From NCBI GenBank assembly GCA_000708835.1, contig DF237027.1, positions 62,001 through 126,000 on the forward strand: a stretch of 64,000 nt of DNA, given 5' to 3'. The DNA comes from Klebsormidium nitens. Taxonomy: Eukaryota; Plantae; Klebsormidiophyceae. The position numbers were made by a program, and so were the translations under genes. A model generated the notes under the pieces. The model was not told where the DNA came from. It ran no database searches and saw nothing but the letters and a program-made list of their open reading frames with translations. This document shows positions 1-30,632 of this stretch, one piece after another (positions within the stretch are counted from its first letter, which is position 1; every line of letters starts with the position of its first letter).

Positions 1-3000
1 CTGGTCGACCGTGATCATTGAACATCGGCTGCAGCCGCCAATGACCTGACAGAAGGCCGACGAGAAAGATGAGACGGAGGACTAGCATGCAAGTCTTGTT
101 TGCTCGGCATTCTTATCCAGAGCAGAAAGTCAGAGGACCAGCTTGATAGAAGGTCTGTATCTTAAAAGGGCCTCTGATTTTAGCTCTTTCACGCTTTCGC
201 ACGAAGCTCCTGGCAAAGTTCTCCACGGTGGGGCATTTTGAGCACAATCAGGATTCAGCAAAAGCAGAAGACTTCCAGAATCCTTTACTACCGACAAGCC
301 ACTTGCAGCATAGTCAAAAACCACTTCACCTACTCGCTGTAAGAGCAGGTGTCACGTATTGCCGATCGAGTCAGTAAGGTCCGCCGAAATTCAACCTCAA
401 AAGGTGCTCTCACAACGGCAACACAGCCAGCAGTTGCGAAACTCTTCGAGGCTCAGAGTACCATTGCTGTTGATCGGCGCATTCATCAGCGACTTTCTTT
501 TACTGCGGCTGGTCATTGGGCGCGAGCCCCTCACCCCGAATTGCTGACCGGCGATCCGGACCTGCTGCCACGTGTCCTCCTCGAACGGTTCCAGACCCCG
601 GACGACGAGGTTCGGCCGGAACCTCTCCGGCTCCAAAACCTCCAAACCCCGACTACCTTTCTTTTTATCCCCCGACCGTCCGTCCGTTTCTACCATTCGC
701 CGGTTGAGCTCTTCCACGCTCGCCGTGTTCACGAGCAGAAACTGCCCCTCGTTCGCGAACCCTAAACTGCTGTCTAGCTGCTCGTCTGCTGTAGTATTTA
801 CCTTTCTATTCTCGTTTGTCTGCGCTGCAGACGTGTGATGCGGGCTGGCTATTTCGGATTGTTGCTTGAGCTTATGAGGTGTTTGTCTATGTACAGTGCG
901 GGATCTGGGCTGTTGTCTGACTAGGGTACAAGGGATGCCCAAAGCGTCCGAGAACCAGGAGGAAATCTCAGGACCGTACGCATCCGCGCCGGGCCTGCGG
1001 AGAAGAAACCTAACTCATGCAAACAGGAACTTTTTTGAGCAGGATCGGATCTGCCGTCTGACGTCTGGTGTCCCTCTGCTCATAAACTGGTCACTGGAAT
1101 CTAGGGCACGCTTTCTAGCCGCACTGAGGAAAGAAAGACGAGAAGAAAAACAGAAACTGCTACTTGCCTGTCATCTGCCTCTGAACATCATCACACATGT
1201 AGCATCAGAGATCACGGGTTCTTGGAAAGCCCCTGGCTTGGCAACGGAGAAGGAACCAGCGCTTCTATCCTCAGTTTCACTAAGCAGACCACAAAGCAGT
1301 GGCTTCGAACTTCGAGATGTTGGTGGCGAGATACGATTCAGTCTAGCTATATAAGCCACATTCTATCCCCTCAAAAAGATTTTAACCTAGGGAGAAATAG
1401 AATCAAACCCTCATCAATGCAGAAGGCAAGATGGACAGCTTTTGAACGCAGACAAGCTCCCGACGAGCATGAGTCCCTAGAGTATTGCGCCACTGAACGA
1501 ATGGACTCACCGGTCTCCACAAACTTGTACGGTTCCGTCGAGTGTCGCCCTTGGGCGCGAGTGCAGTGGAACAAGTAGCGCATCTTGCATGGCACGTGAC
1601 GTCACACGGAGGTGGCCCGCTTCTAGGTCGATCGAGGCTTGCAGCGTGCATAGAGCGGGTACCTGTGGCGGGGCGTGAGGAAGGCGGGTAAGCAGACAGA
1701 CACCAAATGGCGTGTTTTGGACGTCCGAAATGTTTGCGTAATAGTCCGTAAGTAGTAAAACGACAAGCCCCACGTCGAGGCTTGATGACAAACTCCTTGG
1801 TGGCACCACGCTTGGAAGGTATCCAGATCAATAAGAAGTGAACAGACTGAAGGCTTACAGAAGTACTCACACATATCTGCGTCAGACGCTAACAATTATC
1901 AATGAGGCAGGAACAAGCTTCAGAACATGATAAAACTAAAACGTCGCCTCTTTGCCTAGTGGGGAGGGCGATAAAGCTCTCACCTTCTTCTGCGTCAACC
2001 CGTTTCCTCCGGAGTCGACCAGCAACCACTCTCGATCGTACAGCAGGCCTGCACAAACATGACGTGAGCATGACATAAGCCCGGGCTCCGTTCCCATGGG
2101 CCGCGCTCCAACAAAGGCGAGCTTGTTCCCAAAAACGAGAGCCTTCTGGTGATACAAAGAGACCACCGAGAACTCCACGTGTCAAAGGACTCAATGAAAG
2201 GCGCCTCTCAAAAGACGGCTGTAAACAGTCATATCTGAAGATCATGAACACGGCATGTGAGGGTTGAAAGCTTACCGTTGGGCCCAATGGGCCAAGCGTC
2301 CGGAGCGAAGCCTCCACACGACTTGATCGGGTACAGGAGGATCTTTTCCAGGACCATCGGCTCCCTAGCGCAATCTGCACGGAACTTCTCGGACTTCAGT
2401 GATTCCGCCGGAAAACTTTTCTTCCCTGCAAGACTGGACGCTGTGCTCGCTCTGACACCGCGCTATGCAACTTCTACTTTCATCGCGTAAAAAACAAAGT
2501 GCTGTGCGCGTGGGCAAGAGCGATCTCTGAGGAGCAAGGGAAATGACAAAAACGATGATACAGCCACTTCAAAAAGGAATCCCAAGGCACAGGAGAATGG
2601 TTCAGTCAGGCGCATTCGACTTTAATCTCTGCTTGATCAAACCGCTGCTTGTTCGAACCCGAGAACGGATCTGAGCAGATCCGCCGTCCAAATCCACAGG
2701 AAAAAGTGAGTTTAAGCCATTATTGACTTGGCCAGCCGCAAACAAGTGGTCATACTATAAGCCAGAACAAACCAGGAGTCAAGTCGGGCTCCGTAACGCC
2801 GAAGGGAGCCAACACGGACCTGTATCCTTCGCCCTCGACTCGGCAACACCGTTCCGCTCGCTCAGCGGTTCCGGTTCTGTCACCACAAAGTAGTCGCGAA
2901 CGAAGCGGAGAACGGCGCGGGCGTCTTCAACGGTAGTCATGTAGCCAAAGGAAATGCGGATTGCGCCCGTCGGGCGGCCGTCAATGAGGTCCTGATCGTC

Positions 3001-6000
3001 CCAGCACACGTGCCCAGCCTGCAAAGAAACAGAAGGAACGTCTGGTTTTAGTGTGTCAACGGTTTTGCCTGCAGGTTTAAGTTAGCAATATTTGAGGATG
3101 TGCACGTTTGCGGCGATTGCCTCAGAGAGAAGCCCTGCTTAAAGGTACAGCGGCGACGGAATAGGTCGGAAGTAGAAAGCGGTCTGCAGGTGCCGTCCCT
3201 TTCGTCGTGCAGAACGGGGTGTACATCAAGCGTCAGCGAAGATGTTGAGCAACGTGTTGAGCTAGAGTGGACGGCAATATGCAGTCATCTGGATCATCAT
3301 ATGATTTGAAAGGCCAGCACGAGCAAAGGGATTACCTCGTAGTTGGCTTCCATCTCCGTCGAAGTGAGGCCCAGGTACTTGGCGCAGGCTCCAGGGTTGC
3401 AGAAGCACCCGGTCTGCAGCGCGCAACAAATACGAGTATCAAGAAAGTACTCAGGAAAGTACTTGCTGCTAGAAACCTCTTTTCATGACGACAAGGTATT
3501 TTTCTTGATCGAGGTTTTTGCCGTAACACCGCAGAGATAGCTTCCTTCTCGCTCCCACACAGAAAGAAGGCAACGTACGAAAATAAACAGTCCTCTTCAA
3601 GTACTTGTCGAAGACGACGGGCTCAATTACATCTCCTTTTAGTCACAAGAGACACAACGCTGTGAGAAGATGTTTACACTCGCATTTAACTTTCTAAGGA
3701 CACGTACGCTTCTTAGACTCGACACGGAGCAGAAATGGAGCATAAGTGCTCGGGCGCTCTCTCTTTGTTTGGAACGGACTACTTTGCAACCCAGACTTCC
3801 CGGAACGAGAGAGTTCACTGACGGAGACAACCGCAGCAAAGATGCTTCAAAACTGTCACCTTTTATAGGATACATTGCTCACCCTTAGCTGAATATCCCT
3901 CAACCCCGCCAACTTTTCCACCTCCCTGTAACCAACCCAGCTGCCGTCTGGCCGCACCAGGTTGAAGGCGATGATCGGGCCCTGGTTTTGGCCGTCGTTG
4001 GCAGCATGGTTTCCGTAAAGCACGCACGCTTTGCGTCCGTTACTGTGCCGCAGGCTGAGCAGTTCACGAGCCGTGAACTGCGTCAGGGCGGCCGTGTGCC
4101 TGGAAGGCGGGAGTGGTCAGCAAGACGTGAGCAAGACGTCAGCAGTCGACAAATGAAGCTCACTCTTTATCTATGTCTCTGTGACGACTGCTTGGTTGAG
4201 ACTTGATTGGACACGATCCGAGTGTCTGGTAGAGTGGTTGAAAATGCCAGACAAACGGCGATCGAAAGCGTTGAAGAGCAAGGTAAGAAGATATTTCAGG
4301 CCTTCGCTTGGCTAGGGGCGAGAAGACCGTTTCAGGGAGTCCCAACAGCAGGATACAAGAAACCGATTTCGATGTCAGCAGAGCTAGATACTCAGACACA
4401 CAGACCCAATCTTCTCTGCACACTTGGAAGGAAACTCTGAATCGCAACGTTCCCAGGTACGACTGAGACTTCGATTCAGGGGGTTCGTACATGAACGAAA
4501 CTGCCTGCTTACTTTCTGATATTGTCCATCCCCAGCTTTTTGACAGCGTCAAACCCGTGCCGAAGTGCAGCCACGCCTAAGAACGAGGCTGTGCCATCTT
4601 CCAGCCACTCCTCAAGTCGCTCTCGCCTCCTCATGTAATCCTTGTCAGCAATCGAAACAGCAACAGTACCTGCAGCAAAAGTAGTTCTGGCAGGTTTGCA
4701 GCTGCCCGCTTTGTATTGATAAATCGTGTAAGACTGGGGTCAACTTTGCAGCCTCTCAACTTGAAGGTGACACAGCTCACCACTTATCACACTAGCACCA
4801 CGGACATAAATCTTTCCAGACACAAATGATAATCACGTAAGAACATGTACGGAAGATAAACAAGCAGTCACCATATGAAGTAGAGCCGTAACCACAGCCA
4901 TTGGCAACCAAGCAGAGTCTTATGTATTAGAATCGAGATCCCTGACACGTCCTCCAGAACACTGTATCCCTCAAAACTTATCAGCGCGGCCTAGTAGAGG
5001 TTCGACGAGGAGCTCACCTCCGCTGAAGTACCGCTTCTGCAGGATTTGACCGGCATCTGAGTAGACAAACGAGAGGTTTGGCTTCCTTCCACCAGAAGAA
5101 CTATTTGCTTTGCTTTCATGTAGCAGGATGACCACTTCAGTCGGAGAAGGTGAGCCCTGAGGACATGCCTGACTTTGAGCGAAGAGAGATACATAGTAAA
5201 GCGACTGCAAAGAAGGAAGTGTGCACTAAAATCTCACAAAGTCGTGATTCAGGTGGGGAAACAAGCGCCTGGGGCTCACCGCTTCGAACTAAAAGGGCCC
5301 CTAGCCCTGTCGGGTAGCCAAAAATCTTGTAAAAGGACACAGCCACAAATTCCGGCTGATGGATGGAAAGATCTGGTGGGGCTGTTCCACAAGCCTTGGC
5401 GGCATCTAGAAGCACCTTCCAATGGCCCCTGCCGCAAAAGAAGATGCACACATGAGAGAAGTTCTTCACGAGCAGCTTAGAGCAAGGACTTGTTGGAAGA
5501 GACCATATTGGACAGACACGGATGGTAACGCTCTGGAACTCCTGACCTTGATCATGTCTGGAATGACCAAAGCAGAAGCCATTTTCTAGTCAACTAGGCT
5601 TACAGAACCCTTGAGGGGGCTTCTACAGCATCCTGACATTGCCTGTGTCCAGGGGGAATCTGGACCTGAAAAAACTGAATGATGGCTGATCTTCTCACCT
5701 TTTGCCAGACCATTGCCCCTTCTGGATCTCCTCTACTTGGCTGAGATTGAGCTTGGCACCAGAGAAGTTGCACTCTGCTGGACAGGCAAACAGGTGGAAG
5801 ACCTCATCTTGAGGGGGATGCTCAATGGAACTACCAGGCGGATCATGCTTCAACTGCGGTCTGATCAGTGGCTCCCGTCTCTTTACTGACCATTTCCTGC
5901 CCCCGTCATCTTCTGAATCTCCACCTATGCTCGTCTCAAAGTCTACAGGGCAGACCACAGCTCCTTTCTCAAGCGCGTATTCGCGGATACCCAGGGCGCT

Positions 6001-7043
6001 GTTGTGGTTCTCAACAGTATAACAAAACTCGCTCTCGCTGCTCCAAGGAAAGACTTCGCCTAAGAGCTTGAGGGCGCCTGTTGCCCCTGCCGTGAATATG
6101 CACGTGTACTCTGCTGAGGAGGTGTTGAAGAAGGACAGAACCCTTGATCGAGCAGCTTCAATGATGGTAGATGAGCGGGTGCTTCCGTCAGACTGCGAAT
6201 CTGCGGACGGGGAGTCAGAAAACTGAAGGCCTTAATCGATGCCTTACTTTTCTGGCTCACGGCGCATCACTACTACTCTATTGGCAAGCGTAGAAAATTG
6301 CAGAGGAAATTCCTACAGAAGATGGCGTTTAATGGCACGGCACTTTCAAACAGTGAAAGTCTGCAATCGATGCAAACCCCTGCAATTGATTGCGAACGCA
6401 CTCTCAAAGCAGCTCAAGTTCTCAGACGGTCCTGCGAGCCGACGTAGGCTCTCATGGAGTGGTGCGTGGCTTGGTGAGGGGCTTACGAGGATTCCCAAAC
6501 AGGTGCCCCCCAAGCTCTTCGGTTGTAGCTTGAAGTTGAGACTTTGAGTAAAGTGTGGCGCCGGCATGATCAACATAGACAGCGCCTGCAAAACGTGATG
6601 GCAATTGTATTCAAGCTCCGCCCAAGAGTTGTTGATTGTATCTCCCGGATAGTATCTCCGGAAGAGTAGTGGTATATTAGGGCCATCCCAACATGAAGCC
6701 AGACTCTTGCGTGCTCATGCAGCATTGCAAAAGCTTGGCACCCCTGCTTACCTTGCAATTGGGGAAACTCTGCTGCACGCCAGCTGCTAAAAGCAGCATC
6801 ACTCATTCCATAATTGCACTCCTTGATGGTATGCTGGTCCTCTGCTTCAAGAATCTTCTGATTTCCCCCCACCTTCCTTACACACGCAGGTTGAGCTCGG
6901 CTAGCATGCACCTGGCAATGCTGTGGCGAAAAGAACCTCAGATAAACCACCAATCTGCAGAAGAAGCTGGCCACTAGTGATTGTGCCCCATGCACCCACG
7001 ACATGTTCTTGCAGAGCGCTTCGAGCAAACTTCTGTTTCGCAT
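1..7043 (-). CDS. ABA3: Molybdenum cofactor sulfurase (NifS-like PLP domain plus MOSC domains), multi-exon, 3' end outside the window
   Basis: Exons in transcription order, all GT-AG with consistent phases: ?..6752 (start codon uncertain: ATGs at 7043, 7004 or 6806), 6585-6487, 6200-5699, 5428-5280, 5056-5018, 4669-4513, 4099-3883, 3413-3336, 3018-2820, 2425-2276, 2048-1984, 1662-1511, 994-535, 45-<1. They encode VYVDHAGATLYS, LFGNPHSQS, CIFTAGATGALKL, ENHNSALGIREYA, CPAECNFSG, VLLDAAK, SFYKIFGYPTGLGALLVR, KRYFSGGTV, TGCFCNPGAC, GHVCWDDQD, GAIRISFGY, LYPIKSCGG, DREWLLV, FANEGQFLL, RFRPNLVV and GGCSRC, collinear with plant ABA3 as I recall it. Confidence 0.95.
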
Positions 7044-8222
7044 TTTTTTTCGCAATTGCAGTGTAGGCGAAGCTAGCACTTCCGCTTCAAGATACCTATT
7101 TATTCTTGCAGACTAGGAATCTCTTTGAAATCCGACTCCAGCAGCTTCCTTGATGCCTCCGCACACAAACCTTTCCCCTCTTCGTGCAAATTTCACTTCG
7201 GAAAGTTGTGCAGAAACTGAGAAAGCAGCTGAGCTTTGAACAAGCGCTTTGAACAGCATGCAGCATCACTTTCATGCGCGCCCAGTATTACACGCCCCGG
7301 CGTTTTCAACCCTCGTTGGCGCGTGTAAAATATTCACCAAGCAAGCGCCCGGTCTTCTTTCGACGCCGAAAAATCGTGATAAGCCCGGTAGAACGAAATC
7401 TGGTGAAGAAACATTCACTCACAGGGACAACAATCGTTGAACAGAAGCAGTGCACAACGTACGAAGAGAAGCACAAAAGCGAAATCGAGCATCTTTTTGC
7501 AGGTGGCTGATGAGCCGACATCTTGCAGTGCTGAGTTCGAGGTTTCAGAGGAAAGAGGATGTTCGAAGATTTGAGAAAGGCGGACCCTTAAGTGATCTGC
7601 ATTCTCCCCTGTGTAAGCAGCTGCTGATGCAAAAGAGTCGAGATAAGTAGCAGAACGTAGACTGCAGAGATAAGTTATGGTGACATGCGAGGAAGGAGAC
7701 ATGAATCTTCGGTTGGTAAGAAAGACAAGAGCTCTTAGGACTGTTGTGAAGCTTCAAAAGAAGAGGTGATCACACAAAGGGTGCAGCATGCAACAGGCAA
7801 ACCTGGGGATGCATATGCAATAACGAAAGGGTGGATAGTCTGGTCGTGACTAAGGTAAGTCCTTCCTCGTGATTTTGCAGACAAATATCACTGACTTTGA
7901 AGACGCCTTGAACCTATCAAAATTTGAAGTAGCCTCCTAAGTATGTTGTCCCACACCAGTCTCCATCAATAAAGAACACTAGACCTTCGAACATCATTCC
8001 TGACATTGACAGAACAGCTGCCTTGGGACAGATTTTAGAAAACTGTGGTAAAGCTCTGTGAAGATGTAGCCTGTAGATGGGCCAGTATGAAGGAGGATAG
8101 GCTGAGTACAGTCTTAGAGACTGAAGTGGTTTAGGCTTTCCTTCGGCGGTTGCAGGAAACGATCGGCAAGGCAGGCTCAAGAAGAAGAGATCTTGTCAAA
8201 CCTTGGCAGAAGGCCTCTGGCC

Positions 8223-11200
8223 ATGAAGTGCAACTCTTGCTGGAGAACGCTAGAAGGGCGTGCTGTGGCAACAACATGTGGACACGTCTTCTGTATCCAG
8301 ATATTTGCACTGCTCTCATCGTAGCCCTGTTCGATATCCAAAGAAGAGGTCGAAAGCGACTTGAGGATCCGTTGAAACAGAAGCATGCTTGGTTGCTACT
8401 GTGCCAACTCAACGTTCTCAACCGTTATTCTCGGGACAGCCCTTTGTGAATTCCTTGACGATAAGACGTGCAGGCACGGAGGATGCCAGCAGGATACTCA
8501 ACTCGGATTTGACATGTCCACTTTGCGAGTCAATCTTGTCCAAAAGGTCAGCAACGAACGCCACTTTGATCCAGCTTTAGTGAGTCCTCAGCAGAGCTTG
8601 CATCGAGTGCGCCATCTGGTGCTTGTATCTCAGTCCTTCCTTCACACACCATTGCATTCTCATGATCGTCAAGGCCACCGTGCTGCTCAATGTGCTAATT
8701 GAGTCGCTTCTTCGAAGAACTCTAACGCATCGTCTCTCGCTTTTTGCCCGCAGCAACATGAAGACGGTGGACATGATTCCAGGAGACGAATGGTGCAATG
8801 TAAGTTTCTTACAGACCGTTTGAAGCAGGATCGAACCTGAAAACGTCTTCCGCGAAGCTTTCCACAATCCCTACATTTTTTCCGAGTGACCTCACTTGCA
8901 TTTTCAGCTTTTCCTGGCTTCACGAATGAAATCGAAACTTGTACTGAGCGCCGTTGCTTGTTGCTGCAGATGTCCATGGCCGGAGTCGCGCCCAACATGA
9001 GTATCCACCAAGACGCAAAGCAGCATTTCGCTCTCGTTGGCCGCTTGTCCGCTTCTCTGATGTGATAGGCGTGATTGACAGCCCTTACCCATCGAATCCT
9101 CAAGTCCCTCCTTCAGACGAAGCTTCGTTTTTATCGTCCTTCCGAAACAATCTACCAAAGTGAGGAGCACGGAGTCGAAGTGAAGCAAAGTCACTGGAAA
9201 GACGTCCTTGACAAGCTGCGCAGTCATGAAGAGCGCGTTCAAGGGCGTCGTCTTCTGGATCGGCCAGAAGGACGTGGAGAACCAGGTGACGGTCAACAAG
9301 GCCATGGCGCTCAAACAGAAGTGCGAGGAGATGCAGACCAAGTACATGGAGAAACTAGAGCAGGTCCACGCGGCGTACCAGAAGGCGATGAAGAAGGTGC
9401 AGGTGCTGGAGCACGAGAAGGATCAGCTGACCAAGGACAAGAACGAGCTGCAGGAGAAATACACCGAGAAGTCGAGGTGAAGCGCCGTCGAAACGAAATT
9501 AGTTGGAGGGATTCCTGCGAGCTCTACGCGAGATGCTGCATCTGTTATGGAGCTTCGATTTGACGAGCACGGGCTTTGGGCGCAGCGTCCATCAGCCGAT
9601 GCTGACGAACTTCAAGTTATTTCGCTTGCCTTGGAGATTCTACCTGCTGAAGGTGGCCGTGTCCTGTACGAAAAGGAGACTAGTTGCGAAGTGTTGGAAA
9701 GGGGGTTTGCCGCTGTTGACGCACGAAATTCAGATCGGATCTAGGCATTTTTGGGCTTCGAACGAGACGAACAGAAGGCAGCCCGCAACGAAGGGCATAA
9801 GCTGTCGTCAGAAAGCATTCAACAAAACGTACACGAGTGAAGTACAGCAGGGTCGAATCGGCTTCGTTTGTGAGGAAGTGTGACGTCAGCAAATGTCCCC
9901 TCTCCTCTTAACTTGCAGGCAGAAGCGCAAGCTGGAGGAGATGTACGACGCGCTGCGTAACGAGTACGAGCAGCTGAAGCGCGGCGGGAGCGCGCGCGCG
10001 GAGCAAGCGCTCGCGCCCCTCCAGCCGCGCGACCGCAACGCCATGATGCCGCGTGGAGCGCCGTACAACTTCGGCCCCTCGAACAGCTTCGACGAGCCGG
10101 CCCCCAAGAGCCGGCCCACACAGGGTTACGAGCAGCTCGCGTTTCGCACGGATACGAGTTGAGAAACGTCGAACAGGGGCTCTCAAGTGTTAAAGCTTCT
10201 GTGCCTAAAAAAGTGCGTAGGTTTGCGGTATCTCTGTGAGAGAGGAGAATGCGAGGTCAGAAATCCTGAGGGTGTGCAGATGGTCGAGCTCCGCCATAAT
10301 CAAATCCAGATTGTGGGACCTGAGTACGGGAATGCTTCGCCGAAAGGATGACAGGGCTTTGTTAACATTTCTGAAACGGACGATTCTTTTTACCAACAAG
10401 GACACATAATTCGATTGGATGTGTTCACTTGTCTGTCAGCAACTGACTGTTTCCTCTTGTGCTTCCTAGGATTTCTCGACTTGCCCGCCCGTCGAAATAG
10501 CGCTACGTCCGGTCACAATCAAGGTGAGGAATCGTAAGTCTCTCAGTCCCCCAGCTCCGGCTTCCCGTAGTCCGCTGTTTGTTGAGTCACGGCGGATGTT
10601 CCACGCGAAGAATGATTTTTTGTGGATGACGTCCTGCAAAAAATAATCATCCATCTCCGGGTTGCTCGAATCCACGAGTTCTTTGCGAAAGTAGAATTGC
10701 AGTTACTTTTCCTCGTTCAAGAGCCTGGATCTTCTCCGTCTGCCACCCTGCCTATCAAACTGAGTTGAATGAGACTTCTCTCTCGCTTGCTCAGGTTTCT
10801 TCGACGTGCCCAGTCTTCCGCCCGCTCGTCGAGCCAGCCCCGGGCCTGGCGCCGGTCTAGGTGCAGGCAAGTAGTATCCATTGCACTTTCAGATACAGCA
10901 AGCTCGAAGATACTCAGTACTTGGGGCACGGGTATGGTTTCTGTGTGGGTTAGGGTGGAAACGGTGCGCGGACCGCATCGGTTTGTCTGAGGGCTTTACT
11001 TTGGTGCGTCCTCCCGGTTCAATTGTTTCTTTATTCGACCTGGCTCATGTCAACCTGAAATTGATACAATGTCTGAACAGGCATGCCTGGCTTAAACCGC
11101 GGCCCCCGGTCACTGTCTCCACTTCGAGGAGGCGATCCGAACGGCTCACTGTTCACTCCGGCCGCCGGAAACCCGTCCAACAACCTGCGGAACCTGCTGC

Positions 11201-23427: not shown

Positions 23428-24800
23428 ATGTCTCCCATGTCTGTGCTCAGGTGAGCTGAGGGCGAGCCGAAGCTTGGGATTTCGACAACTTTGGCAGGGT
23501 CAGTCTTCTACTTTTTGCTGTATGATGCGAGCGCTGAGACTGGGTTGGTTCGGTCAGGACTGCTTGTGTCTTGACCAAATCTCTTGCATCAGTTGTAGAT
23601 GTTGAAGATTGGCTCAGGTGTTAAGGTGATGCATGAGGCCAATTTTGAATCTTATTTGAGGTACAAGGATCAGGAAGTGGGAGATTTTGCTAACCCAGAT
23701 AATCAACAGCGTTGATGACCCTCCTGCCTTCAGGGCGTCCTCAGAACAACATGTGATAGGATTGCGCAAATATGAAGCTGTATGGTTGCACAACTAGTAC
23801 TCCATCCAACCAAAATTCGTTTCAATCAAACATGCTACAATTCACAAGCCATTTCGTACATCAAGCTTCACCGTAAGCTTTGAGACTGATTGTAGTTGAA
23901 CAAAAGAAGGTCCGAGATACACGAGTCTTTCTTCAGATTGAACAAAAGTAGGGAAGCAAAACTTCCTGCACGGACTCTGCAAGGTCTACGCGCTGGTGCA
24001 AACAGTTGCCAGGAGTCTGGCGCCTTATAGGGGTCATCTTTCGACGTACTCGCGTTCCGCTCTCCAGCCAGACGTTCCGCTCGCAGTCCGCTCTGCTGCG
24101 TACGGCTTCTCGCCTCCGCACAGCACTTCATTTGCCACGAAGATTTGGGTAAGAACCGGTTCAACAATGGCTTTCTGCTTATGAAAGGGCATGCTAAAGG
24201 TTTTTTAAGATGGAGACTTGTGCATCTTGCCTCAAAGAGCTAAGACCTCTTCCGGTAGAGGCTCGAATCATCAACAAGAAAGAAGCCCCCACTACTGCTT
24301 TACAAGTTCACATTATGTGGCCTTAATAAGACCAAAAGACCTCCAAGCTGAGCTTTCCATCCCCTATAGGCGTCTAGTCAAGAGAGGATGCTTTTTCACC
24401 CGACTCTGAGCAAAGCGGAGTCTCTCTTTGTTTTGTTGACGAAGAGACACGAATGTCACCTGTCCCCGTCGCGAGTCTGCAAGTTGACAGACCTATTACT
24501 CTTACGTTCCACACCAATCCCAATGCCTCGTCGGTGCAGAAAGAAGGGGACCGTCACATGATGGAGATCGACGGCAGGAAGGTGGAAGCCCTTGACTACT
24601 CATCCATGAATAAGCTGGAGCCAGAAGTGACGGGGCTAACAACAAACGTGTGGCTCAGCCAGAAGTACCCGGGGCGCGTCTGGATCTCACACGTGGAGGA
24701 TGACGACAGGCCTTGGGAATGGGAAGAGCTGGATGCCGGGCACCTCTTCCCGATGTTCCAAAAGAAGTCCGGTCCAAAAGAACCAGCATCTGAGGAGTGA
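23428..24800 (+). CDS. Paralog 1 of a tandem triplet: transit-peptide-like N-terminus plus truncated 'VTGL..W.S' domain
   Basis: Tentative exons 23428-23450 (MSPMSVLR, donor gtgagc), 23984-24148 and 24491-24800, about 165 aa in frame. The exon 2 translation is R/S-rich with no D/E. The last exon has LEPEVTGLTTNVWLSQKYPGRVWIS, homologous to the ORFs at 27605 and 30279. Internal exon boundaries are less certain than for the other two paralogs. Confidence 0.6.
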
Positions 24801-26345
24801 AGCCAGCAAAAACTTCTTTGTCATCAAACTCGCTTGTCACGATACTCAACTAGGCATACATTGAGGTATAGCTTAGGTCGAGCTTACAAATAGAAGCTGG
24901 CCATGATCGATTCATGAAGTGTCTACCGGTTCCGAATCCATCTAGAACATTCCGCTTGGTTCACACGTTTTAGAACTCAGGTTTGTGTCTGCACTTTAGG
25001 TTTCCAAACGTAATTCAAGGCAGACAGGTGCACCGAAAACGGCTTATCATGTGTTCGATCGCCAGCATAAGGTGTGACGGCAGCTGATGGACATCTTCTT
25101 GAGCTTCTGCGTAGACTACAGGGTTGATGTCGCTTGTGCTGTTCACCAGTACCCAGAAACGGAAGCGCTAAAGGCAGGAAGTTTCCTCTGCTACCAGCAC
25201 GATCAAACGGTTCGTCAGACATGAAGATCTAGAAGACGTTCGGAGCAGTCTGCCTGGTTTGCATTCTTGCCTGCATGTTCGTTTCGGCGTCCAGTGCCAG
25301 GTTGCGCGTGTTCCAGCGTTTCACGTGGAACCCTGTAAGCACAGTTGTTGAAGTGTCAAACGTGCTTGGAAGTGCAATGCACGAATAAGTGCACGGCTAG
25401 CTGCCTTCCTGTGTCCACAGACACATTCAATCTCTCTTTGATCGTCAGTTGCGGGTGAGACACGACATGTAAACTAAGTAAAGCTCAGCGTCCATGCTGC
25501 GTGTTGGAAGTGCAAGCATGTAGATACGCTGTAATTTGATTGATGTCGGCTCATCAAATCATACGAACCCATCGACGTTAAGTTGCCACGAGCAGAGATT
25601 CGGGAAGGCCCAACTAGAGAAGCTGAGAATTTGGATAGCCCAGATGGCTCAGAATGAAGCCACTTGCTTACAATATCACATTTTCCCGACAAGGCGAAGT
25701 CGTGGTGACATGTGACCAGAGATTCTTGCATAAAAGACTCAGACGGGACATCATCAGTGCACCGTCTGAAGAGCGTTCCTTGGCATAAACACCGAAGGAG
25801 AAATCGAACCAGGTTTTGGCCAGGCGGCCGGATCTTCCAGCGGACTCCAGGCCGTATGTGAACCTTGTGCGCTGAGCTTTCCGGCCAGCGGAAAGCAGGA
25901 TTTTCCTTCATCCATAGAGCGAAACTCTTTTGACTAATCCAGTATAGTCGATACATTTTGATACTTCAAAGCGCGCGCGTGTGACTGGGAGCTCACCTCG
26001 GTGTTTCCCGCCTAGAATCGACTGTAACCGGGGATTTACGACAGTTGACATCCAAATCCAACCCACAGTTTACAGTTCAGACCGAGGGAGCATCTGCTTA
26101 CAGCACTACTCTGAGGTAGGAGACTGCAACTTTTGGTCGAACTCGCAGAGGAAGGACTATTCTGTGGCAACATTCTGGCGGATGCTGGTGGGGTGAGACC
26201 AGGAAGGATAAAGTCTCCTTCGAGCAAAACCACAAAAAGGACTCTCTTGGTTGCGAACAGTGAAAAAGCCGTCTTCTTGGCCTTCGCCTCTGAAACTTGA
26301 TCCGAATGTCTGGCACAGCGGGGGTCTTCCGTAACATTAGCTAGC

Positions 26346-27796
26346 ATGGCGTTTTCTGCAATCAGGTGAGCTCAGCACGCCCTCCAAAGCAGCATGATCA
26401 CTTGCTGAGCACGTTTCGATTTTTAAAGCGTAGGATACAGTTGAAGCCGGATTGAAAAGCTCGCTATATCTTCTGGCATGCAAGAATGTACTTTATCTCA
26501 CAGCGGTGCAAAACTACTTGATGCTGTTGACGCTGCTGGAACATGGTGGATTCAGATTCTGCTCCGGAGCTCTCAGGTATTCTTTAGCTCTTCTGACCGG
26601 CGCTGAACTGCAAAGATTTCGTGCTTTTTGGTACAGAACTGGCCAGAGGAGATACATTCACTGATCAACTTACACGAATGCTTTGCCAGCTTTTAGGATC
26701 AGTGGTCGAGCATAAGCAGGCAATTAATGCATGCAAAGTTCTCGCAGGTTTTCGACTTCAGTGGTGCAGAACGCGGCAATTATGACTGGTCCAATGCCAA
26801 AGAAAGTTCACTCCACTTACTCGCCTTTCGCTAGCCGGTCATACGCCGTTCCGCTGAAGAAAGGCTCAGTCCTATGTGGATCCAAGCATGAAGACAATCG
26901 TTTCATGGCCTGCAAGAGCTGGGTAAGCTTTAGCAGTTTACGCAATCTGTGCCAGCTACTGGAATCCGCCAGGATGATTTTTGCGCTTCATGTGCCTTTT
27001 GATTTTGCTGGCTTCATTGTCACCGAGATGTGACCAGAGCCTTCAAAGCTGGCCTCTACAGATCTTGGAGTAGGTTAATTGTTCATGAGGCTCTTTGACG
27101 ATAATCTGTTGATTCTTTCTCTGGTGACTGCTGCTTGCTATTTATGCAGTCAGCCTCTGATTGTAGAGCAGCATCCATTCCATTCTTTTGATTGGTGCAT
27201 CGCGCAGGTGACCACAAGGACTTCATCAGAAAAACAGAAGCGGTCAGGAGCGCCCAAGCAAGTCTCAAAGATCCGAGCTCGGGTGAGCATTCTTCACACT
27301 GGAAACTTTCGATGGCGCTGATCACAGTTTCCGTTCAGGACGTATCGCTCCATTGCGCAGCACTTATAATAGCACAGGGAATTGCTTCAGAGAACGGATC
27401 AATGCGCTTTCAATGGGTTTTGAATGCATTTTGTGCTGTACATTTCTTCAATATATTTGCTTTCGAGGTTGCCTGCTGGTGGTCAAGGGTGTATGTTAAC
27501 AAGCTGTCTGACACTCGTCTCCTCCTTATCAACAGAACGAGGATGTTCATGAAGTTGAGGGAGGTTCTGAAGAGGAAGAGCTGCAGCTGGACGAGTCTAA
27601 TTCCATGCTGGAGTTGAAGCCAGAAGTCACGGGGCTTCCCATGTGCATCTGGATCAGCCAAAAGCACCCTGGGCGTATCTTCGTTTCAAAGCGCTATGGA
27701 GACGATGCTGAAGCTGGGGACTGGTTCGTAATGAACTTCGAAGACATGTTATCTGGTCCAAGAGGGAGTTCGGACGACTCAGAATCGGAGAACTAA
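26346..27796 (+). CDS. Paralog 2 of a tandem triplet: transit-peptide-like N-terminus plus truncated 'VTGLP..IW.S' domain
   Basis: Exons 26346-26365 (MAFSAIR, donor gtgagc), 26748-26922, 27208-27282 and 27536-27796 join in frame with canonical GT-AG sites (176 aa). The last exon contains LKPEVTGLPMCIWISQKHPGRIFVSKRYGDDAEAGDWFVM. Confidence 0.72.
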
Positions 27797-28855
27797 TCTA
27801 GCAGACACGTCAGTGTAGACCGGACATTCTGGTGCTTCCGTAATGGTCTACTACAGGAAGCAAGGGTTTCAGAAGGGATCCATTCGTGGCGACAGCATGA
27901 CTAGAAGGCGAGCAGTTTTTGATATTTGAGCATCTGTGTACGGACGTCTTCGCGTTGATCTTTCCGAGTCAAACTGATTACTCAACCAGTGATCTTTTGA
28001 TGAGTTTGAAGTAGAGCGGCTCCTTGCATCGATCCAATTGAGAGAAGCCCTTGTGTATTCAGCATGGTTTGTGAAGCAAGCGCCGTCATGCGTCAACGAG
28101 TTGCTCGGGTCTAACCTGTGAAGGCTCGCTGGACTTAGCATTGGTATGCGCCTCGAGCGGTGACACGGCTAATAATGACGCTGCACAGATGGGGGTATCT
28201 TATAATGGTCCAAGTAGGAAATTCAGATCGCTAGGAAGTCATCCAAGTCGCCGTTCTGATTGATGAATGTAATCAATGTTTTTTGACATCTGGCCGAGTG
28301 CCTACTATGATCAACCAGGCACAGACTTTAATTCAGGGATACTTGTGAGTCCTTATTTCCTTATTTTAGAGCAAGCGTGCTTGATTGCTTATATTAGCGG
28401 GATCGATCTATACTAATATCTATACGTGACGCAGTTCTGCTTCGTGCAGAATAATGATTCGGAGCTTTCGTCTCAACTTGAATGCTTGGTCTAGATTTCC
28501 CTCGCCTGACGTTCCGCCCACCGGAGACCTGGTGTCAGGCAAGTCAGCAGAAGGGCCGCAATTTTCGCGCGCGTACAACCTTTGCGCAGCTAAGATAGTC
28601 TCATTTGCGTGCTCTCGACGTGAATCGATCCTCTAGGGTCTTAAGACTTTGCAGCAGTCGATCCCCGGTTGATTCTCTATAAAGGGACGTTCCCTGTTGC
28701 GGAAGCCTGGGGGCCCTGAAGGCCCGGGGGGTGACGGGGCGGGCTCATCTGGTCGCGAACCTGAAGAAAGTCGCGTATCTACAGCAGCTGGCCGCCTCTG
28801 ACCTCAATGAATTAGTACCACCCGGCACCCTTTTGAAGTCTTCGGCGGCAAGAGC

Positions 28856-30632
28856 ATGGCGCTTTCAGCCCTCAGGTGATGACCAAGATAGCAACATCTG
28901 CTAAACACTTAGTTAAAGCTGAAGGGTTTGATTGTCCTTCAAGAATGCTGGTGGGTACCACTCTTATTTTTGCAGTCCGCTTCTAATCTGATGCGTACTC
29001 CCCAAGTATGACAACATTGAATACAAAGCTCGGTCTGGTGGTGTACGCTCCTCTGTGGTATCTTCTCAAGAACTGTTCACCGCTCTCTTGTTTGCGTGTG
29101 GCCGTGAAGCAAAAGGTCGCAATCAAAGGTTCGTGGTGGAAGCGAGCTTTTGTACGAAGGCAGCTGACGGTGTACGCTTGAAGCAGACCTTCACTGTTTA
29201 CCCTTCTCTGACATTTCTAAAATTGCACGGGCAGAATTTTCAAGGTTATCTGCCCTTAAAATCCTGTGGGCGCCGTTGGCTTGTCTTCGTTCAACAAAGA
29301 CCACGAGACACAAAACAAAGCCAACCAACGAATCCCACGGACTTTGCCAGGTGCTCAAATCTGGCTAGGGGAGTTCCCTCTACGACTCCGGGAACCGACA
29401 ACAGCCTTTCACAGCGCTGCGCATATGTTCCTCTTGGATACGCTTCGCTTGCTGGAGGCTTCGACAACTGCCTCCAGGCATTCGTGCCTCAAAGGGATGC
29501 ACTTCGTGGAACGCTCCGTCCTTGCAGGTATGAAACTCTGGGTGCCGTCCCAAGTTTTCACTCAAGCCGAGTCTCTGGAGGTTAGTTGAACCTGAACCTT
29601 CGTTCCGCGAAGAGCATTTGATCCTTTGGCAGCATTTAGGATTATGCTAGTATCCATGTGATCAAAACGTTCTCGTTCGATTTGAACCATGCAATCTCAA
29701 CAGCTGCGGCCCGTTGTTGACCATGTCTGTGCTGCATCAAACCCGCCAACTTTGCCTTTAAGACGTTCTCGGACCCAATGTATCTCTGGTGCAGAAACAA
29801 AACACACTCAAGGTCTTGGCAAAGAAAAAGGCTCAGCCAGCTCTCACGCGAACCCAGAAGTATAGGACGGCGGTGAGTGACTTCTGCTGGGCAGCTTTCA
29901 GCGCGCTCCCCGTGATCTTTCTGCTGAGGAAGTGGGTCCCTCTAAGTTCGTTAGAGGATCTCACATCTGTGCGGCAAGGATTCACAGCAAACCGCTTCTT
30001 GTTAGGAGAAAAAAACAAAAAACCCCTTGCATTGCAACCAATGGGCCTTTCCAAAGGGCACGATTGGCTCTCTAACAGTCAGTTAACGCGGTGAAAGGTC
30101 GTGCTCTGCTGACCACTTCTTCTTCCGACCAGTAAGGCGAAGCCTGCATGTTGCAAGGTCAAGGCCCGCTGCATTTCATTCCGGCTTTCCTCCTTGCTTT
30201 CGTGCGGGATTTGTCATTTGGTAGAGCAGAAGTTCATGGCAAAGCTTCCGTCCATTTCAGGACAAGTATCGTGAAGAGGTGGCGGCAGTCGACATGGCGC
30301 ACGTAAAGAGACTGGATCCCAGTGTGACTGGGCTTCCGATGTCGATTTGGCTCAGCCCAAGACATGGGGACTACAGCCCTCGGTTGTGGGTTGCACAAGA
30401 CTACGGGGAGCAAGGGACAGCCGGAGAGTGGTTCATTATGAGTGTTGCTAAGCACTCGAAATCTGTAGGAAACTCGGGGCGTATTGACATCGATGATTTC
30501 GAGATTATAGAAAAGTTCATCCGGAAGAATCGGAAGTTACTGGAAGCTTGCTGGGAGCAGGACACGTGCTTCGACATCGATGACGTTGTTGCGCGCTTGA
30601 AGAAGCTTTCAACAGCTCAATCGCAAGGATAA
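28856..30632 (+). CDS. Paralog 3 of a tandem triplet: transit-peptide-like N-terminus plus full-length bacterial/phage-type small domain
   Basis: Exons 28856-28875 (MALSALR, donor gtgatg), 29351-29527, 29795-29872 and 30230-30632 join in frame, all introns phase 2 (225 aa). C-terminal domain: RLDPSVTGLPMSIWLSPRHGDYSPRLWVAQDYGEQGTAGEWFIMSVAKHSKSVGNSGRIDIDDFEIIEKFIRKNRKLLEACWEQDTCFDIDDVVARLKKL. Confidence 0.75.

Follow-up and report, generated by a model that had tools for sequence, protein, structure and literature searches.

Horizontally acquired bacterial genes are known in general from streptophyte algae. The described systems closest to the locus presented here belong to the DUF4160 superfamily (PF13711), in which DhiT of Dickeya dadantii 3937, a growth-inhibiting toxin with an unknown target, pairs with DhiA as a type II toxin-antitoxin system (DUF4160/DUF2442; PMC8198452). 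Within DUF4160, toxin activity that a cognate antitoxin neutralises has been demonstrated by experiment only for DhiT/DhiA (PMC8198452). In the Menshen antiphage system, NsnC-like proteins carry DUF4160 at the C-terminus as an effector domain, its fold class unknown (PMC12065111). Here we describe three genes lying in tandem on the + strand of scaffold DF237027.1 of Klebsormidium nitens (genes 1 to 3), all of them annotated as hypothetical proteins. They were analysed within a stretch of 64 kb that we call the window and to which positions refer unless a locus is named (window coordinate = coordinate in our locus L011 + 19007). Our results show that they are tandem paralogues built on a prokaryote- or phage-type, DUF4160-related domain, probably left by an old and domesticated transfer.

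Like DhiT, the domain of gene 3 is small (about 100 aa) and alpha/beta; its bacterial relatives, to which gene 3 is homologous along the entire domain, pass the DUF4160 gathering threshold. DhiT and the gene 3 family are also alike in having no solved structural homologue (PMC12065111). Unlike DhiT, gene 3 has no PF13711 match of its own, and the algal genes have introns and N-terminal extensions. The canonical DUF4160/DUF2442 operons (PMC8198452, PMC12065111) differ from the gene 3 subfamily, for which no DUF2442-like partner was found at 128 prokaryotic or viral loci. In the alga the neighbours are the paralogues, an alcohol dehydrogenase gene and a 907-aa gene, with no DUF2442 gene seen among them, although no DUF2442-specific scan of the window was made. 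The domain of Menshen NsnC falls in the same Pfam superfamily as that of gene 3, but it is fused into a bacterial multidomain defence protein, whereas in the alga it is encoded by a terminal exon and preceded by a short basic leader, and no Menshen components lie near the algal genes. The cluster resembles other transferred genes of streptophyte algae in being prokaryote-type with acquired introns in a normal nuclear context, and differs from them in that the donor family here is a toxin/effector-type small protein and not a metabolic or signalling one. Literature searches with the gene identifiers, and with Klebsormidium combined with horizontal gene transfer and toxin-antitoxin terms, returned nothing, with no mention of these genes or of DUF4160 together with Klebsormidium.

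The last-exon domain and its nearest relatives

The last exons of the three genes share a core whose similarity is beyond chance in BLASTP comparisons (E=4e-14 for genes 3 and 2, 2e-12 for genes 2 and 1, 4e-8 for genes 3 and 1), and the homologous peptides quoted in an earlier, sequence-only reading of this DNA are present there. The whole domain of about 115 aa is found only in gene 3; gene 2 retains its N-terminal half, and gene 1 roughly one quarter (Table 1), consisting of the N-terminal helix and the strand of the TGL loop, with the P of TGLP replaced by T. No remnants of the lost C-terminal half were found downstream of genes 1 and 2, and no further copies of the domain within the window. 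The amplification that had been proposed is seen in the three tandem paralogues, but two of the three copies are truncated.

Bacterial or phage proteins had been expected as the closest relatives of the domain. The best matches of gene 3 (P0002-P0007, P0010, P0014 and P0029; 30-43% identity) lie instead on contigs with eukaryotic signatures, and the nearest relatives are a clade of such eukaryote-type contig proteins. The signatures comprise Adaptin_N together with an ILVD gene split in many pieces, Med22, DNAAF11 together with a 2082-aa Tudor/PUB/EF-hand protein, and JmjC together with a Ty3/gypsy chromovirus (NCBI assembly GCA_030012865.1). The density of open reading frames (ORFs) on these contigs is 0.5-0.65, like that of the window, against 0.98 at a planctomycete-type bacterial locus. 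No synteny between the window and the relatives' contigs was detected beyond the gene itself.

In an IQ-TREE analysis of 78 rows and 121 columns, all nine eukaryote-context sequences fell together with gene 3 in one 20-row clade (ultrafast bootstrap 95, Shimodaira-Hasegawa-like approximate likelihood ratio test (SH-aLRT) 80) and every bootstrap tree (100%) had a branch that kept all of them on the same side; the grouping of gene 3 with P0002 and P0004 had a support of 96/97. In a larger tree all named bacteria were placed across a branch with an SH-aLRT support of 96. Among the name-bearing matches, from collections that included NCBI, UniRef and EukProt, the sole named eukaryote was K. nitens, so that no broad, vertically inherited set of eukaryotic homologues appeared.

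Because the nearest relatives form one clade on eukaryotic contigs, the transfer would be old and shared. To judge from the sequences, a bacterium or a phage is likely to have passed the gene to a eukaryotic ancestor once, long before K. nitens. The parsimonious reading would be a single old transfer into a eukaryote followed by descent and duplication. The algal genes carry spliceosomal introns and N-terminal extensions, and their tandem duplication took place in the Klebsormidium lineage. Gene 3 has kept the whole fold, gene 2 the beta-sheet half with an acidic tail, and gene 1 a remnant. The horizontal acquisition and domestication put forward in the sequence-only reading thus remain likely as regards a prokaryote or phage source and the gain of introns, but the event appears to be old and shared with other eukaryotes rather than specific to K. 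nitens.

Two loci of relatives carry further copies. On a eukaryote-type contig from the same sample as the closest relative of gene 3 (L004), two domain genes lie in tandem at 6721-7149 and 8001-8399, and tandem duplication in the family is therefore not unique to K. nitens. On contig JASCQU010007384.1 of GCA_030012865.1 (L142, 10001-10360) the copy appears to be frameshifted at TGLP when set against P0015, a close relative. This points to a pseudogene or to a mistake in the assembly; the copy adjoins the Ty3/gypsy chromovirus element.

The family in bacteria and phages

An exhaustive HMMER search of 1.84 billion representatives gave 119 relatives at E<=1e-3, with the family consensus TGLPxxIWxS...HGPRIKV...YG...F.xTIxDxP...G..G.I...D...V..FI..N...LL..W. 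The most conserved positions are T-G-L-P, W33, S35, H41, R44, K46, N93 and W101. A single peptide pattern recovered 182 relatives from the bacterial and archaeal species genomes of GTDB; at least 182 bacterial species carry the family. They come mainly from Acidobacteriota (Bryobacterales, Terriglobia) and Alphaproteobacteria (Caulobacteraceae, Stellaceae, Geminicoccaceae), with further members in Nitrospirota, Spirochaetales, Methylococcaceae and others, and the family gene is also carried by 48 viral contigs of IMG/VR. The consensus fits the pattern that had been given for a family of hypothetical proteins of about 100 aa from bacteria and large phages, and the domain does belong to a family of uncharacterised proteins, about 100-120 aa long, from bacteria and large tailed phages.

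Against a bacteria-only profile built from 80 named-bacterial sequences, gene 3 scored 54.1 bits (positions 21-124), gene 2 27.5 and gene 1 14.0, where the best of 200 shuffles reached 2.1 bits; genes 2 and 1 matched only the N-terminal part of this profile. The stand-alone TGLP...HGPRIKV proteins of bacteria and tailed phages (BFVD A0A6J5LAD3 and A0A6J5LA28; loci L012-L139) are of the same family (54 bits), length and predicted fold as gene 3. Stand-alone genes of this kind are common in soil bacteria and in large T4-like phages. Of the most conserved residues gene 3 retains those of TGLP, both W, S35, R44 and N93, but it has Y at the H41 column and W for K46. The bacterial and phage genes are intron-less and single-domain and lie among housekeeping or nucleic-acid-metabolism genes, whereas the algal copies are spliced, N-terminally extended and present three times in tandem, with two truncated.

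No conserved partner gene emerged across the 128 prokaryotic and viral loci. The largest same-strand neighbour cluster had 6 members and was of housekeeping type; such clusters comprised a class II aminoacyl-tRNA synthetase, an FtsX/MacB permease and aminotransferases. At one alphaproteobacterial locus (L037) and five similar ones, a solo family gene lies between the genes for a class II aminoacyl-tRNA synthetase and an FtsX/MacB-type permease, a conserved position that argues for stable chromosomal residence and not for a mobile toxin-antitoxin cassette.

The viral contigs nearest to the algal branch are those of T4-like large phages. On one 239-kb IMG/VR contig (L097, 1877-4697) the family gene (2947-3327) is found between an Rnl1-type and an Rnl2-like RNA ligase, the latter with a PHA02142 OB domain, and a homing endonuclease adjoins; this context may point to a connection with RNA repair or anti-defence. 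On another T4-like contig the gene lies near RNR and gp32, and on a third it adjoins a DNA ligase. A tblastn search of gene 3 against 50,697 GenBank phage records gave no match, and a word-indexed homologue search with gene 3 gave no candidates. In three members (P0034, P0006 and P0016) a single protein contains the domain two or three times in tandem, and the fold is also present inside plasmid RepA-family proteins of about 443 aa (an Atlas cluster); the domain is therefore used as a module in larger proteins.

Relation to DUF4160 and predicted fold

Gene 3 remains below the Pfam gathering threshold of PF13711 (no match), whereas bacterial members of the family pass it with 24-51 bits against a cut-off of 23; PF13711 is matched at E<=0.01 by 14 of the 85 family members. 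As far as sequence comparison goes, the family is a divergent branch of DUF4160, to which gene 3 belongs by transitivity, at the level of the superfamily and not through a direct Pfam match.

An AlphaFold2 model of the gene 3 domain made with the family alignment had a predicted local distance difference test score (pLDDT) of 89.3 and a predicted template modelling score of 0.84; a single-sequence model was poor (pLDDT 54.7) and was left unused. The predicted fold consists of an N-terminal helix and a beta-sheet with the TGLP loop and an H..R.K strand, followed by a C-terminal three-helix unit with the conserved N and W. This model matched a DUF4160-tagged Atlas cluster with a template modelling (TM) score of 0.79 over 111 residues (root mean square deviation 1.8), and the top cluster of a feature search was DUF4160-tagged as well. 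It also matched Uroviricota clusters of the Atlas (TM 0.76-0.78), the N-terminal region of RepA-family proteins, and three proteins of uncultured Caudovirales in BFVD (TM 0.71-0.81). The DUF4160 identity proposed at the outset is thus borne out by the bacterial relatives and the Atlas cluster, but not by a Pfam match of gene 3 itself. Among solved structures Foldseek found no counterpart of the fold at E<=0.001 and the best VIA-align Z among 48,161 chains was 4.3; a sequence search of the last exons against the PDB gave nothing meaningful. The charge and pI of the domain are near neutral in all groups and uninformative for function.

Gene models, splicing and first exons

The cluster is flanked by a zinc-type alcohol dehydrogenase gene on one side and by the 907-aa gene on the other, in sequence of uniform GC content (about 51%). 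The exon joins of genes 2 and 3 reproduce the annotated proteins exactly (Table 1). The exon model of gene 1 rests on length and frame only, and since 1122 models fit the annotated length, length is not decisive.

Table 1. Genes, exons and domains of the cluster, in window coordinates
Feature	Position	Strand	Description
Gene 1	23428..24800	+	Annotated range, product 139 aa (L011 4421-5793)
Gene 1, exon model	23428-23450, 24013-24148, 24540-24800	+	Gives 139 aa, GT-AG introns
Gene 1, mini-exon	23428-23450	+	23 nt, MSPMSVL+AG, phase 2
Gene 1, domain remnant	24573..24668	+	Profile positions 7-38 of 124 (hmmsearch, family profile)
Gene 2 (KFL_000780160, P0272)	26346..27796	+	137 aa; exons 26346-26365, 27150-27282, 27536-27796
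Gene 2, mini-exon	26346-26365	+	20 nt, MAFSAI+AG, phase 2
Gene 2, alternative exon	26748-26922	+	S/T-rich, acid-poor; in frame with exon 1, phase 2 to 0
Gene 2, half-domain	27569..27748	+	Profile positions 6-68 of 124, then acidic Ser/Asp/Glu tail
Gene 3 (KFL_000780170, GAQ81355.1, P0001)	29008..30632	+	207 aa, K. nitens annotation
Gene 3, exons	29008-29128, 29528-29580, 29795-29872, 30261-30632	+	Join reproduces P0001 exactly
Gene 3, mini-exon-like element	28856-28875	+	20 nt, MALSAL+AG then GTGATG, phase 2
Gene 3, complete DUF4160-related domain	30273..30617	+	Profile positions 8-120 of 124

RNA evidence came from the contigs of four runs from two studies. In gene 2 the intron 27283-27535 (GT...AG) is removed in a contig (X2 record 5) that joins 15 letters of 27267-27281 to 27535/27536, and the runs therefore hold RNA. 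It is the only intron at the locus with an RNA-confirmed splice junction. RNA contigs cover the 3' end and 3' untranslated region of gene 1 to about 25208 in 4/4 runs, and their coverage of gene 3 is limited to 28827-29096. By their annotation and the RNA contigs, the members of this tandem cluster are genuine nuclear genes that undergo splicing. As to the introns predicted from sequence, the junction of gene 2 is joined in RNA, but a contig reads through the donor proposed for gene 3. The peptides that had been quoted are all present. The S/T-rich middle exon of gene 2 is in frame, but annotated gene 2 skips it and splices exon 1 directly to 27150; the RNA contigs bear on this exon neither way.

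Tiny phase-2 first exons had been described as shared by the three genes. ATG-led mini-exons do occur three times, each with GTGAGC or GTGATG directly 3' of it, and those of genes 2 and 3 are identical at 23/27 nt of DNA. On the + strand of the whole window the pattern ATG, 5-8 codons and AG/GT(A or G)AG has 2 matches, exactly genes 1 and 2. The annotated starts of these two genes are the mini-exon ATGs, but that of gene 3 is at 29008 and not at 28856. The element of gene 3 lies outside P0001, and at the proposed donor 28875/28876 the RNA contig 28827-29096 follows the genomic sequence without a break. When unspliced, all three mini-exons run into AGG-TGA and form an upstream ORF (uORF) of 7-8 codons. 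For the element of gene 3 there are two readings: a first exon that is unused or used alternatively, or, within the 5' leader, a uORF of 7 codons (MALSALR-stop). No mini-exon-like elements were found upstream of the relatives in other eukaryotes. If the annotated start at 29008 is right, the leader uORF of gene 3 (28856-28879) is the homologue of the coding first exon of gene 2; a first exon would then have turned into a uORF, or the reverse.

Weighing the alternatives

Several observations count against an old transfer that has left a working DUF4160-type domain in gene 3. The tree is unrooted and short (about 121 columns), and the direction of transfer therefore rests on distribution and not on nesting. 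Context information is lacking for 11 rows of the eukaryotic clade, and the hosts of the relatives are judged eukaryote-type from contig content. Scans of the three last exons against Pfam, NCBIfam, PHROG and PADLOC gave no match even at E<=10, and the PF13711 matches of the family are limited to its C-terminal half (model positions about 27-64 of 65). At two columns of the basic strand gene 3 departs from the bacterial and viral consensus, with H41 changed to Y and K46 to W; an H is found three residues upstream of Y41, beside a 3-residue insertion. Gene 3 also lacks the ED.P motif of its eukaryotic relatives (SVAKHS instead of TIEDxP), and with these motif losses its domain may be inactive. 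Finally, the last exon of gene 3 has no RNA contig in the four runs.

The unrooted tree, and the fact that the nearest relatives all lie on eukaryote-type contigs in one clade, would also suit a family that is ancestrally eukaryotic or ancient and vertically inherited. Its patchiness would then be due to losses and sparse sampling, and the copies of bacteria and phages would be recipients or equally old. We regard this as unlikely, since K. nitens remains the one named eukaryote among the name-bearing matches despite the collections searched, and since bacteria and phages have abundant and diverse members of both the family and the DUF4160 superfamily. Transfer from a prokaryote or phage into a eukaryotic ancestor is thus preferred. 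As to the nature of the transferred domain, the HicA-like RNase toxin that had been suggested draws on the general analogy of a small toxin-family protein and on nothing else; it was tried and rejected, there being no HicA Pfam match and no HicA among the PDB fold matches, and such a fold is highly improbable.

A further question is whether genes 1 and 2 are in decay and no longer functional, being duplicates of gene 3 that persist as transcribed pseudogenes in a cluster without joint function. They keep just 25-50% of the domain, gene 1 lacks the P of TGLP and all that follows the first strands, and the missing half has left no trace downstream. Against this, both genes are spliced or expressed with open frames, and other samples contain two close relatives of the last exon of gene 2, P0059 (87% identity) and P0049 (69%), which end at its truncation point after the beta-sheet half and carry a similar acidic Ser/Asp/Glu tail. 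As the end point and the tail are the same and the core is almost invariant among the three, the sequences argue that the half-domain form of gene 2 is maintained and not simply decaying. Joint decay of both copies is therefore possible but the less probable outcome, while decay of gene 1 alone is quite possible because no gene 1 orthologue was detected and gene 1 is more eroded than gene 2. No gene 2-type orthologues with DNA, as needed to assess dN/dS and conservation of the cluster, turned up in two metagenome scans. The N-terminal ends of the same genes invite another doubt, namely that the tiny first exons are conserved uORFs, each giving M-x-x-S-x-x-R before the TGA, and that translation of the main protein begins further downstream. 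The AGG TGA ending of all three unspliced mini-exons points that way, as do the downstream start annotated for gene 3, the RNA contig left unspliced across its element and an in-frame downstream ATG of gene 2 at 26731. Yet AG/GTGAG is a consensus donor in which the TGA may occur by chance, the mini-exons are spliced in the annotated models of genes 1 and 2, and in-frame continuations are available for all three, so that we consider uORFs rather unlikely as a general explanation, though a live alternative for gene 3 in particular.

Possible function

Basic residues are frequent and acidic ones rare at the N-termini: the first 53 residues of gene 1 contain 5 K/R, 1 D/E and 19 S/T/A, and annotated exon 1 of gene 3 contains 6 K/R and 0 D/E. 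Such N-termini could fit organellar presequences, while the K/R-rich exons 27208-27282 (gene 2) and 29795-29872 (gene 3) could equally fit nuclear localisation signals. A leader of this kind might perhaps send the full-length protein to an organelle or to the nucleus. Given the toxin and effector roles in the family and the position of its phage members among RNA-ligase, DNA repair and replication genes, one may speculate by analogy, and with some doubt, that the full-length protein works in nucleic-acid or RNA metabolism as a small effector or binding module, which the conserved half-domain paralogue may then modulate. A complex prediction for the gene 3 domain with the last exon of gene 2 scored 0.00, which counts neither for nor against binding.

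A bolder and quite improbable version would have a DUF4160-type toxin domain of phage or bacterial origin, domesticated once in an algal or protist ancestor, become a nuclear-encoded two-component module in Klebsormidium, with gene 3 as an effector on organellar or nuclear RNA or DNA and the gene 2 type as an antitoxin-like regulator. If this were correct, a eukaryotic toxin-antitoxin-like or defence module would have arisen from one domain by truncation.

The evolutionary observation is well supported, and its immediate impact is moderate. If the old transfer is true, the cluster would belong to the first described eukaryotic branch of the DUF4160-related toxin/effector superfamily: a small prokaryote or phage protein would have gained introns and leaders and spread in eukaryotes, and one streptophyte alga would have diversified the domain into full-length and conserved truncated forms. 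The locus would show how toxin-type domains can be tamed in eukaryotes, and it offers a tractable case for probing an uncharacterised phage and bacterial domain with no solved structure or known target.

RNA contig in the spacer between genes 1 and 2

The spacer that separates genes 1 and 2 has no annotation, yet a colinear RNA contig of 288 nt (run X1) covers 25635-25922 there. The contig overlaps a minus-strand ORF of 160 aa (25474-25956) and is maybe an unannotated transcript, or else carry-over of DNA or pre-mRNA.

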